A DNA stretch of 5,052 nt, from the NCBI GenBank assembly GCA_965644295.1, contig CBFFRP010000595.1, forward strand, positions 1 to 5,052, written 5' to 3'. The notes beneath the pieces were generated by a model, which searched no databases, was not told where the DNA came from, and saw only the letters and a program-made list of their open reading frames with translations. The position numbers were made by a program, and so were the translations under genes. Position 1 is the first letter of the stretch, and each line of letters starts with the position of its first letter. This document shows, in pieces, positions 1 through 5,052 of the stretch. This stretch comes from Paraphysomonas bandaiensis (Eukaryota > Protista > Chrysophyceae).

Positions 1-90
1 TCAAATGAATTTAAATTGAAACTTTCCCCTACGTTGGTATTTAGCTATCCAACTATTGATGATATCACTGGCCACATTCTTGAATTGCTT
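1..90 (+). other. C-terminal half of an acyl carrier protein (ACP) domain
   Basis: SNEFKLKLSPTLVFSYPTIDDITGHILELL matches the ACP C-terminal consensus LxLPxTLxFDYPTxxxLxxxL. Confidence 0.9.
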
Positions 91-3000
91 GGTGTTTCCG
101 ACGTAAAGGAAGAGCCAGAACATGGGCTGACCAGGACATCGAACTCTCGATTTGACAGTGGCGATATGGCTATAGTTGGTGTAAGTTGTCGATTACCTGG
201 CGATGTGAATGATTTGAATTCAATGTGGGAAATGCTCAGTGGAGGTCGTGATGCGACAAGCGTGGTGTCTCCATCTCGCTGGGATGTGGATGCATTAATT
301 GCACGCAGTGATTTGATGGATCCGAGTGTGTTGGATCGTGTTCGTCACGGCGGTTTTTTGTCAGATGATGTTTTGGAGGGTTTTGATGCACCTTTATTTG
401 GAATTTCTGATGCAGAAGCCTCCCATATGGACCCTACCCACCGTTTGTTATTACAATGTGCCTACGAGGCCTTATGTGATGCAGGGTACGATATGTCGAC
501 AATGAAAGGTCAGAAGATTGGGGTATTTGTGGGGATTTCTGGTGTGGTTTCTTGTGATAACACTTCAAATACGTCACATAGTAACGACAAGTCGTTGCCA
601 TCAGTGTATGATGCCACAGGAAACACTCTTTCTGTCGCATCGGGTCGAATATCTTACGCATTAGGGTTGTGCGGCCCTTGCATGACTTGTGACACCGCAT
701 GTTCATCCTCGCATGTAGCACTGCACTCTGCCCGGCGCTGCCTACAGCACAACGAATGTGACAGTGCTCTAGTTATCAGTGTGAATTGTTTATCCACGGC
801 GTCATCTGTGGCGTGTGCTATGGCTGGCATGACATCGCCTGATGGCAAGTGCCACACCTTTGACGAGTCAGCCAACGGGTACTGTAGAGCTGAAGGATGT
901 GGTGCCTTAGTATTGAAGCGATTGAGTGAAGCTGAACGAGATAATGATGGTATTTATGCAGTTGTACGAGGGTCGGCAGTGATGCAGGACGGTAAGAGTG
1001 CTAGTTTGACAGCCCCCAATGGTCTTGCCCAGGAGCAGCTTCTTCGTGCGGCATTATCAGATGCCGGAGTGGATGCTGGTGATGTATCTCTTATTGAGGC
1101 TCACGGGACTGGGACGAAATTAGGTGATCCTATTGAGACGGAGGCTTTATCGTCGGTATATGGTCATGGGCGAAGTGAAGAGAATACATTGTATGTTTCT
1201 GGTGTAAAAGCGAATATCGGTCACATGGAGGCAGCAGCTGGTATAGGAGGTATATTGTCAGCGATATTGGCACTTCATTATAAGCAAGCTCCTCCGAATG
1301 CCCAGCTGCGTGAGCTGAACTCGAAGGTGGCAGCATCTGTGTCAGGCAGTCCGATTTCGTTTCCCACGGAACCTACTCCATTGGTTCGACATGGGGATCG
1401 TCCTTTGTTAGCTGGAGTGAGTTCATTTGGTTACAGCGGCACAATATCTCATGTGATATTGGAAGAAGCTCCCATCTCTCACTCCCGCTCGCCTGGTGTA
1501 CTTTCTAGTAGCAAATCCTCCTCCACTGTATTGTCGGAAACATGTATAGCGGGTATGGTGTGGCAATTTGCTGGACAGGGGACACTCAGTGTTGGCGCAT
1601 TGCGCGATATGTATGAGTCGGAATCTACGTTTCGTGACGCTTTGAGTCGGTGTGATGATATTCTTCGATCTCATCTGGGTGTAGGTGCATCTGAGTTATT
1701 GTATCCTGGGATCTGTGGTAGTTTGACTGAGATTAGTGCAGCGGAGCACCTTTCGGAGACTGTGTACTCTCAGCCTATACTGGTGGCTCTTGAGTATTGT
1801 CTGAGTCAGGTGTGGTTGTCACGGGGTATTCGCCCAGCTGCAGTGATGGGTCACAGTCTAGGAGAGTATGCAGCTGCTATTGTCAGCGGAGTTTTGTCAT
1901 TGGAGGATAGTTTGCGACTGGTGTGTATACGTGGTCGCTTGATGCAGGAGAGTGATGGGTGTGTGGGTTGCATGTATGCTGTCCGAGCAACAGCTGATGA
2001 GGTAATCAGTGCAATCTCTGATTCAGGTTTGACGAACGAAGTGTCTGTGGCTGCAGTGAATGGACCTCGTAGTGTGGTAATATCCGGGTCTGTGAATGGA
2101 GTTCAGAAAGTGTTGAACAGCACTGGTTTGATGAATATGAGTCATCGTCAGTTGAATGTATCGAGGGCATTTCACTCTCCGTTGATGGCAGATATTATTT
2201 CTGCTTATGAGAAGGAGCTGCTATTAGTACAGTTTAATCATCCGACGGTTAAGTTTGTGTCTACTGTGACGGGACATTATGCGGATGAGGAGTTAATATC
2301 ATCGTCATATTGGTTGAAGCATATATTGCAGCCAGTGTTGTATGAGTCAGCAGTGGAGGTATGTTATAGTGGAGAGAGTCGTGATGGCACCTGTGTGTTT
2401 GTTGAGATGGGAGCGGATTCTACATTGAGCCGAATGGGTCAAAATATCTCTCGAAGTTCTAAAGTCCAGTGGAAATGCGGTGTTGATACAATCGAAGATT
2501 TGATAGTTTTATGTCCCCCAGTTGTGAGCAACGTGTCTAGAACTACTACACGGTATGCTTGGTACAATAGATGTCACGCTCTTCTGCAAGAATCCAATGT
2601 GGATAGCGTCTCTGGAGATGTTATCTTTACGATTCGTCTGCATTCTAGTATACTGATGTCATGGTTGTTCGATTATAAACAAGGAGATAACGTAGTAGTC
2701 CCTGTCGGAGCAGTTGTGGAAATGTTTTGTGCCATTGCAAGTCGAAGGAATGAGCGTGGAGTGTTTGAAAATGCTACAAGGCTATCATCGGCTCAACTTG
2801 AGGGGCTGCAGCTGTTCGATAGAATCATAGTTGATACCACTGCTGCGAGTATATATGAAAACAAGGAAGTGACAACATTGTGGTGTTCTTGTAGTGATAG
2901 TGGTATTCTTAGCTTATACAGCATCTCTGCTGGTACGAAAGTAATTCACGCGCACTGTTCTATATCGAAAAATAGTTTAGATATTGCAGTCCCTGAGAAA

Positions 3001-5052
3001 GTGCAGACCTATGCAGAAGAAGTTGATGTGGCTACTATTTATGATCGCCCTGATTTCGTACAACTTGGACAATCCTTTCGTCTACTTCACAGTGTTCATG
3101 TTTCTGACTGCAGGTCCCGCGCTTTTGCAGTCATCAATGTTCCTGACAAACTAATGTGGTCAACATATCTGCTTCCACCCCCATTTATTGAGGCTATGTT
3201 TTTAGCGTCATCTGTTTTGTTCTCTGAATTTGATGGGTCAACAGGAGAAAGTATGGGCGACATGAAAGTACCTGGCGAAGTTGATAAGCTGTGGGTTATA
3301 TCTGACAATATTGGTAGTTTATGGAATCAAAACTTTTGCGAGGTGTATATGGAACGTCAAAGTAATCGAAATGGTGTAGTTGTAAACTTCACTGTATTAA
3401 ATAAAGAAGGGTCAGCTATATTGTGTGCTGAAGGCGTTGTTATGAGAAATATGGCAGAATTTAGTGGTGGTGCTCCAGACAACACTTCCACAGCCATATT
3501 ACAGAGCCAGTGGAAATTTTCTGGACCAGTTAATACTACGCCTTGCTCTATACCATCATGTTTGTTTGTTGGACCAGGTGAGACATGTACAGCAATTATA
3601 GATGTTCTAAATAGCAGCAATTTCACAATGGATATCGCTGACCATGTTAGCATCGGGCCCAATAACGTTTCTCTTATTATTCAAAACGACAAGAAGTACA
3701 ATATGGCTGTTGTTGTTGTTGAAGGCATCGTTGCTTGTGATTCTATCGCAACGTCATACGACCCCATGAATGCTCTTCATTTAAAGGCTTGGCTTGAAGC
3801 TATTGAAATTTTGTGCGGAAGAACGAAGAATTTGATAGTTTTGTCTACAGTAGGAAATGAAGGCGATAACGTTTTCTACAACACGCTTATTGGTGCAGTA
3901 CGATGCGCTCAGTTGGAATATCCAGCAGTGCATATAGTGGTTATTGATATCGATTCATCGATTTCTGATGTGGAAGGCATGTGTGCTGCTTTGCAGAATG
4001 AGATATCTATAATGGATGGTGAGATGGAAGTTAAGTATCGTGATGGTGTGCGTATGGTGAAGCGCTACGAGCCATTAGATTTACCTGTTACCAATACTGG
4101 TGACAATCGCAATGTGGAGGGAGGTACATTCATCATAACCGGTGGGTTAGGTGGACTTGGACTATTGACTGCAAGGGTATTAGCTAGTCATGGTGCGTCT
4201 AGATTAGTACTTTTATCTCGATCTGGCAAGGTATCATATACCGGCCAGGGTCTGGAGTTGGAATTGGAGTGGCTTCGGGAGTCTTCTGGCAGTGAGGTTC
4301 ATGTGATGTGTTGCGACGTATCTGACGAGTCTTCTGTAGTGGATATGTTGCGAGAGGTTCGTGAGATGGGTGGGGGTATTCGGGGAATCATTCATGCAGC
4401 AGGAGTACTTCGTGATGCGTTGATTCGTGGGGGTGGTGCGGCATCTGGTTGTGCTGATGTGTGGGCATCTAAGGCGCACAGTGCGTGGTTATTACACAAG
4501 CACACGTTGGAGGATTCCCTTTCAACATTTGTTGTATATTCGTCAATCGTATCCGCTATCGGAAATATTGGTCAATCTGCTTATGGTGCCGCAAATAGTT
4601 ATTTGGATGGACTTGTAGAGTATCGTGTTCGTAACGGTTTACCTGGTGTTAGTATTCGGTGGCCGGCGGTTTCTGGAGTTGGTATGGCGGCAGCAACGGG
4701 TGCAGACACTGCTGAAGTATCAATTGATCAAGAGTATGCCTGTATATTGGTTAGACTCTTTATTATTTGTAATCATTTTTGTGATGTATTTTCTGTTTGT
4801 CCAATTGGTGCATTTGGTTTGATGAGTCAAGCGGTTGAGATGCAGTTTTCTTCAACCACTTTGTCGCTTTTGAAGAAGCTTGAAGAGAAGCCACGGATTC
4901 ACGACGTTGCAGTACTTTCTCCTAACGAAATTCGACTAAACGTGAAAACCTTGGTTTTGACGATGATTGATTCTGGTGACATCACCGATGACGCTCACTT
5001 AATGGACTACGGCATGGATTCTCTAGGTATGACGGAACTTGCGAATCAGTTA
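1..5052 (+). CDS. Type I modular polyketide synthase, internal fragment open at both ends; one full module ACP'-KS-AT-DH0-KR-'ACP (1684 aa)
   Basis: Manual translation of frame +1 from base 1 (SNEFKLKLSPTLVFSYPT...) to base 5052 (...GMDSLGMTELANQL) gives no stop codon. It shows ordered PKS motifs: DTACSSS, EAHGTGT, KANIGH, GQG, GHSLG, AFHS, GGLGGLG, YGAAN, GMDSL. Confidence 0.97.
163..1473 (+). other. Ketosynthase (KS) domain with intact Cys-His-His triad
   Basis: Starts DMAIVGVSCRLPG; contains FDAPLFGISDAEASHMDP and GRISYALGLCGP. Catalytic Cys is in DTACSSS (700-702), His in EAHGTGTKLGDPIE (1102-1104), His in KANIGHME (1222-1224). Ends GVSSFGYSGTISHVILEEAP. Confidence 0.97.
1555..2460 (+). 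other. Acyltransferase (AT) domain in cis, probably malonyl-CoA selective
   Basis: MVWQFAGQG (GQG 1573-1581), TVYSQP, catalytic GHSLG (Ser 1855-1857), conserved Arg in RGRLMQ (1930-1932), AAVNGPRSVVISG, RAFHS (2164-2178), STVTG, YWLKHILQPV, FVEMG. Confidence 0.95.
2575..3453 (+). other. Dehydratase-like (DH) domain, catalytically degenerate (DH0)
   Basis: HALLQ corresponds to HPLL. WLFDYKQGDNVVVP corresponds to WLxDHxxxGxxxxP with His->Tyr. QLGQSFR corresponds to YGPxF. LLPPPFIEAMFL corresponds to HPALLDAxxQ with Asp->Glu. Ends NFTVLNKEGSAILCAEGVVMR. Confidence 0.8.
3496..4074 (+). other. KR structural (pseudo-KR) subdomain
   Basis: ILQSQW corresponds to LYxxxW. LIGAVRCAQLEYP...VVIDID corresponds to LWGLxRxxxxExP...xDL. 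EMEVKYRDGVRMVKRY corresponds to ExEVAxRxGxRxVxRL. It runs directly into the catalytic KR, leaving no room for an ER. Confidence 0.82.
4123..4830 (+). other. Ketoreductase (KR) catalytic domain, B-type, apparently active
   Basis: NADPH-binding TFIITGGLGGLG (GGLGGLG 4141-4161), LSRSG, CDVSD, HAAGVLRD (LDD-type motif 4408-4416), Lys (4471-4473), YSS (Ser-Ser 4540-4545), GQSAYGAAN (Tyr 4582-4584, Asn 4594-4596), SIRWP. The C-terminal boundary is approximate. Confidence 0.93.
4921..5052 (+). other. N-terminal half of an ACP domain with the phosphopantetheinyl-serine
   Basis: ...ITDDAHLMDYGMDSLGMTELANQL contains the GxDSL motif with Ser at 5020-5022. The domain is cut at the window edge. Confidence 0.92.

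Follow-up and report, generated by a model that had tools for sequence, protein, structure and literature searches.

The window analysed here is the whole of contig C595 (G000:C595), 5,052 bp from a 62.6-Mb assembly of 669 contigs, and it closes on itself as a stop-free, in-frame circle. Here, we show that this circle is a rotation of a slice from within PKS-A, one of three giant PKS ORFs that the 456-kb contig C80 carries within 105 kb, and that it is closed via a 1.6-kb direct repeat. We consider it probable that C595 is a redundant loop of the assembly graph rather than a novel genetic element.

A Pfam profile search gives the domain order KS-AT-DH-KR-ACP on C595, with the ketosynthase (KS) at residues 56-436, the acyltransferase (AT) at 520-819, a weak dehydratase (DH) match at 859-1150, the ketoreductase (KR) at 1375-1558 and half an ACP at 1654-1684, the latter covering positions 11-41 of the 67 in the profile. 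The KS C-H-H triad, the AT GHSxG motif and the ACP serine occur in order, as in a cis-AT modular type I PKS module (Table 1). The initial annotation had pointed to a length divisible by three without an in-frame stop and to an ACP that is restored, with the expected spacing, by joining base 5052 to base 1. Both observations are confirmed: frame +1 holds 1,684 codons and zero stops, and the final 11 residues together with the initial 32 form an ACP (Ser1674, with Pro at +27 and Thr at +28) identical to ACP4 of the PKS on C80, where the genomic stretch matches the PP-binding profile over positions 11-67 (E 7e-16). There is no terminal overlap between the ends of C595, and internal repeats within the window do not exceed chance.

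Table 1. Features of the window (positions 1 to 5052) and of the PKS genes on C80.
Feature	Position	Strand	Description
Whole contig C595, one module's worth of PKS coding	1..5052	+	Rotation of C80 slice
ACP4 C-terminal half	1..96	+	= C80:281137-281232
Ketosynthase, module 5, triad Cys234-His368-His408 intact	154..1485	+	PF00109/PF02801, motifs
Very short KS-AT linker	1474..1554	+	49 residues from the KS anchor motif to that of the AT
Acyltransferase, module 5, GHSLG active site, RAFHS motif	1558..2457	+	PF00698, motifs
Dehydratase-like domain, probably inactive	2563..3465	+	PF21089/PF14765 weak, motif comparison
Loop-closing repeat	3089..4700	+	R1/R2 comparison in C80
Perfect core of repeat, 1,163 bp	3334..4496	+	R1 vs R2
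Ketoreductase, NADPH motif, LRD (B-type), catalytic Tyr	4123..4674	+	PF08659, motifs
Post-KR linker and ACP4 N-half (Ser1674, nt 5020-5022), unit-specific marker	4701..5052	+	= C80:280785-281136
PKS-A	C80:261337-299166	+	12,609 codons, 8 KS, one 37.8-kb exon-like ORF
PKS-A M1-M3			KS-AT-DH-KR-ACP
PKS-A M4	C80:277282-281232		KS-DH-KR-ACP, AT absent
PKS-A M5			KS-AT-DH-KR-ACP
PKS-A M6			KS-AT-DH-ACP, KR absent
PKS-A M7	C80:289966-293970		KS-DH-KR-ACP, AT absent
PKS-A M8			KS-AT-DH-KR-ACP
PKS-B	C80:225230-247273	-	7,347 codons
PKS-C	C80:194291-216169	-	7,292 codons

Where in the genome does the circle belong? Aligned to C80:279173-285836, the doubled window matches over 6,664 bp at 99.9%, straight through the joint of its last and first bases, which are the contiguous genomic bases C80:281136 and C80:281137. 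The earlier view that the register between end and start is no coincidence therefore stands, and chance is rejected as its source because the joint is real genomic sequence, but the special cause that had been sought for it is not needed. As many as 1,164 rotations are exact: every 5,052-bp slice of C80 that starts from 279418 to 280581, for example C80:279418-284469, equals C595 as a circle. All circular k-mers of C595 up to k = 1164 are present in linear C80, and the sole new linkage of the circle spans a perfect core of 1,163 bp. This core is shared by two direct repeats at a lag of 5,052 bp, R1 (C80:279173-280784) in the DH-KR region of module 4 and R2 (C80:284225-285836) in that of module 5, which show 5 differences over 1,612 bp. 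The window carries the R2 letter at position 3333 and the R1 letters at 4497, 4551, 4672 and 4698, following module 5 through the former and module 4 from 4497 on, into the module-4 linker and ACP. Judged by these letters, the true join of the two modules is inside the core and away from the contig ends, and the circle is hybrid, joining KS5-AT5-DH5 to the KR, linker and ACP of module 4. The unit-specific marker has one copy in C80 and, beyond the window, none elsewhere in the assembly, which resolves the locus linearly in C80, with the unit present once between unique flanks at C80:278538-279172 and C80:285837-286195.

The open reading frame of the circle follows from the same architecture. 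Among perfect direct repeats of at least 400 bp in the 130-kb cluster region, the lag is divisible by three in 57 of 57 pairs, as it must be when each repeat copies the same codons of a single ORF. An in-frame, stop-free circle is thus the default for any loop here, and therefore no evidence for a functional circle.

As for the assembler's route of output, we infer that it started from the chromosomal order flank, R1, B, R2, flank, in which B is linker-ACP4-KS5-AT5-DH5(N) and R1 and R2 would be gene-converted DH-KR copies. If the assembler glued R1 onto R2, B and one R would close into a 5,052-bp cycle, which would then have been written out as a separate circular contig although long reads also resolved the linear C80. 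Such a cycle would be in frame and stop-free by construction, with repeats that copy the same codons of one long exon. In line with a loop of this kind, the entire C595 sequence lies between direct repeats inside a longer contig. Its cut lies 5-10 bp from the boundary where unique ACP4 sequence enters the multi-copy repeat (5-9% of positions lie that near a repeat boundary by chance), a faint hint of a graph origin. The assembly holds a second contig the size of one module, C544 (L034, G000:C544:1-4248; 4,248 bp), which is tiled from several PKS-C modules. Its join between positions 2706 and 2707 is absent from C80, passes in frame from the middle of an AT to a DH at only about 1 bp of microhomology, and may be either an artefact or a deletion allele. 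C544 almost closes on itself as well, within KS.

Short, repeat-rich contigs beside a resolved chromosome contig are known as the repetitive contigs of long-read repeat graphs (10.1101/247148) and from repeat-driven PKS misassembly (PMC5484115). According to the Flye preprint, repetitive contigs are written from repeat edges that lack cover by unique contigs (10.1101/247148); unlike these, the C595 unit has full cover in C80 as well. The graph is the same whether a direct repeat lies within one chromosome or is shared between a chromosome and a circle.

DNA runs that hold PKS sequence are marine, and four of them (X1, X3, X5 and X8) were consulted as Logan contigs (31-mer) on C80:280564-286383; X1 and X3, the latter apparently long-read data, may have gone into the assembly itself and hence not be independent, and X5 is another organism's run. 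The initial annotation had asked for sequence spanning the joint, and one ordinary contig crosses it in each of the four runs (L031:758-1169 or most thereof), with 0 differences from C80 in X1 and X3 and four in X5 and X8. The downstream flank is likewise covered by contigs in all four. The raised depth that was expected alongside is not seen: as far as contig depth, a rough guide and no copy number, can tell, the unit-specific stretch (48.7, 39 and 89.8 in X1, X3 and X5) resembles the outside contigs taken as single-copy (35.5-44.8, 25.6-38.7 and 84-114), although in X1 and X3 it is the deepest of the single-copy contigs, at about 1.2-1.5 times the flanks. When all zones are fitted as the C80 copy number plus e extra units, this rough measure gives e = 0.15 (0 to 0.35) in X1, 0.15 (-0.15 to 0.55) in X3 and -0.1 (-0.25 to 0.15) in X5.

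Could the slight excess in X1 and X3 reflect real chromosomes? Mixed 8- and 9-module chromosomes in the culture, or a low-level pop-out circle, either arising via crossover between the DH-KR repeats, are a possibility that we hold tentatively; if true, this would be module duplication observed in progress in a eukaryote. The main rival to the graph loop is a minority allele, present in one haplotype or part of the culture, that gained one extra unit via unequal R1 x R2 crossover, with C80 then retaining the 8-module path and C595 being the extra loop that the assembler set apart; taken by itself, we regard such an allele as unlikely. Loops of low coverage are also separated out by Flye as alternative haplotypes, a behaviour that would fit this allele. 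By computation, the crossover would yield intact alleles with 9 KS (14,293 codons) or 7 KS (10,925 codons); the allele with one more module keeps the frame and would encode an intact synthase with a chain two carbons longer.

The depth fits bear on such an allele from both sides. The ranges for X1 and X3 extend to 0.35 and 0.55 extra units, which counts against the graph loop, and the excess in these two runs becomes 0.30-0.45 when one contig subset is fitted alone; X5 has none. However, the fitted range of each of the three runs includes or borders on zero extra units, and 0.5 extra units fits worse than 0 in all three when all single-copy contigs are used. Similarly, the clean single-crossover pattern of the diagnostic letters is also the product expected of one real crossover, but four of the five letters match the majority letter among the paralogues, and 31-mer contigs cannot phase hybrid linkage across the 1,163-bp core. 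Also against the graph loop, whole modules have truly been duplicated before: PKS-B holds four tandem 5,124-bp modules (C80:225737-245515) that are about 99.2-99.4% identical, with up to 2,092 bp free of mismatches, and that form a genuine and recent duplication array. In addition, gain and loss of modules by recombination is known for the mycolactone PKS (PMC2569948). Coexisting 8- and 9-module alleles would offer a tractable case of whole-module duplication that alters polyketide chain length in a eukaryote.

An extrachromosomal DNA circle, popped out by intrachromosomal R1 x R2 crossover at a low level and assembled from long reads, is highly improbable. Such a circle would carry no promoter and arise as a side effect of an unstable repeat, leaving the chromosome with the reciprocal deletion allele of 7 modules. 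C595 has exactly the sequence expected from pop-out between 1.6-kb direct repeats, and the small depth excess is compatible with it, but no base of C595 requires a DNA circle and the contig is internal coding DNA only, leaving no non-coding space where an origin or promoter could lie. Graph structure is suggested instead by the cut beside a repeat boundary and by the mosaic contig C544, and contig depth, rough guide as it is, makes an abundant circle unlikely. An eccDNA junction test finds every k-mer up to 1,164 bp already present in C80, as expected under a loop artefact and homologous pop-out alike.

More improbable still is a collapsed array, in which several near-identical tandem copies of the module would be under-counted in C80. 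Perfect tandem copies would be hard to assemble, and such a collapse occurred in PKZILLA-1 (10.1101/2024.01.29.577497). Nonetheless, with at least one extra unit per genome copy the fit is 3 to 8 times worse than with none (SSE 0.44, 0.53 and 0.73 for e = 1 versus 0.09, 0.19 and 0.09 for e = 0 in X1, X3 and X5), and e of at least 1 falls outside the fitted range in these three runs, with contig depth as a rough guide. Moreover, the four roughly 99%-identical 5.1-kb modules of PKS-B were resolved nearby in the same assembly. The initial annotation was thus right to seek the origin of a circular contig in near-identical repeats of a giant multimodular PKS, here PKS-A, but its collapse of near-identical whole modules is rejected by the missing AT of module 4, the missing KR of module 6, the depth and the single marker in C80.

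A circular RNA or DNA whose endless ORF would yield, by rolling-circle translation, a polymodular PKS making a poly-1,3-diol is the least probable reading of all: rolling-circle translation of engineered circRNA does work in cells (PMC4639774) and the length and lack of stops would fit, uninformative as these are with 57 of 57 repeat pairs in frame, but C595 belongs to a genome assembly, any loop taken from PKS-A would close in frame, the unit is internal coding of one exon-like ORF, the circle carries neither a loading nor a release domain, and the proposal is needed to explain no base of the sequence. AG/GT registers in the core, as a back-splice signal, are at chance (7 seen versus 7.0 expected), and a sigma-70 promoter scan found 13 matches versus 9.2 +/- 2.8, irrelevant to a eukaryote. 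Infinite-ORF circRNAs (PMC4639774) and C595 are both stop-free circles with a length divisible by three, but the former are demonstrated RNA circles, largely engineered, whereas C595 is, as far as its sequence shows, circular only as a contig. The data do not support the circle as a biological entity, and the real biology is a linear assembly-line PKS. We caution that a self-closing, endless-ORF contig is an expected output from a repetitive one-exon assembly-line gene; C595, and probably C544 too, should be dropped from gene counts.

Similar genes have been described in other organisms. The domains of mycolactone MlsA1 and MlsB of Mycobacterium ulcerans are >98% identical and homogenised by recombination in adjacent-domain pairs (PMC2569948). 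The mycolactone PKS and the C80 PKS are alike as giant cis-AT genes with near-identical domains, and module gain or loss in the former alters chain length; it is, however, encoded by bacterial plasmid genes, whereas PKS-A is nuclear, from a chrysophyte, and has AT-less modules 4 and 7, a short KS-AT linker and probably spliced terminal exons. PKZILLA-1 and -2 of Prymnesium parvum are also giant, internally repetitive protist PKSs whose tandem repeats troubled assembly (10.1101/2024.01.29.577497). In contrast to the C80 genes, PKZILLA is a trans-AT system of 56 modules from a haptophyte, and its collapse was shown by read realignment, whereas at C80 the depth argues against collapse.

Is the loop-closing repeat an instance of GRINS? 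Duplicated windows amount to 69-90% in the three PKS genes, as in GRINS by its duplication threshold of >500 bp and >80% identity (PMC8256042). On the second GRINS criterion (PMC8256042), the repeat R, with values of 0.25 and 0.13, stays below threshold, the AT (0.33/0.19) and KR (0.32/0.23) pass as domains, and of the 24 duplicated regions 7 do so too, several by a narrow margin. GRINS is rejected as the cause of R, given these values, a GC/TA correlation of 0.10-0.38 (0.70 in the GRINS paper; PMC8256042) and an equally skewed non-repeated control ORF. The most homogenised domains, AT (window 1552-2490) and KR (4117-4680), have strong GRINS-like G-over-C and T-over-A skews, reaching 0.59/0.35 at third codon positions of the AT, and over the cluster the thresholds are passed only in patches.

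The parent cluster, with three giant PKS ORFs within 105 kb of a heterotrophic chrysophyte genome, is a more interesting object than C595. PKS-A begins with an N-terminal region that includes an ACP, followed by modules M1-M8, and a thioesterase-like GYSFG motif lies downstream of its stop, probably in spliced exons. With 8 KS, the N-terminal ACP and this motif past the stop, PKS-A has the layout of a multimodular protein that possesses both a loading and a release end. Module order and catalytic motifs resemble those of cis-AT modules such as CurL 4mz0 (E 2e-166) and DEBS; unlike bacterial modules, the KS-AT linker is about 75 residues shorter and the DH His is replaced. In DH5, Tyr892 (nt 2674-2676) takes the place of the catalytic His of DH2, DH3 and DH8, and the domain is probably dead. 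By established motif rules (GHSLG, RAFHS), the AT of module 5 would be of malonyl type. With an active KR and a dead DH, the module would most likely add a malonyl unit (two carbons) and leave a beta-hydroxyl.

All AT-bearing modules of PKS-A lack a KS-AT linker domain, with 49 residues between the anchor motifs, compared with a median of 124 across 172 modules from other homologues, none of which falls below 99. Among named PKS relatives, the best comes from Epipyxis (EP01038_Epipyxis P007976; 48% identity over KS-AT) and shares the short linker, with a spacing of 46, so the short linker may be a chrysophyte trait. In the AT-less modules 4 and 7 of the otherwise cis-AT PKS-A, the KS is directly joined to the DH, as it is in PKS-C module 3, and these two modules presumably borrow an AT. 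The KS-DH side of module 4 forms its own contig in runs X1 and X5.

PKS-A (C80:261337-262200) and PKS-C (C80:215300-216169) share a similar start domain of approximately 200 residues before the loading ACP, which has no Pfam match and may be GNAT-like. Between the divergent PKS genes lies a 577-codon ORF on the minus strand (C80:257165-258898; L028:7168-8898) with a strong opposite skew. It matches no Pfam family, and its homologues come only from marine metagenomes and Paraphysomonas. A gene neighbouring the PKS cluster is 73% identical to a Paraphysomonas protein, and a genome search for rbcL found none. Taken with the Epipyxis PKS match and the marine runs, this makes the host likely to be a heterotrophic chrysophyte from the sea, near Paraphysomonas. 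Finally, the mitochondrial cox1 cluster (L043, G000:C669:49607-50944) includes MBR11265.1, which is filed as a Rickettsiales MAG and is probably a mis-binned protist mitochondrion.
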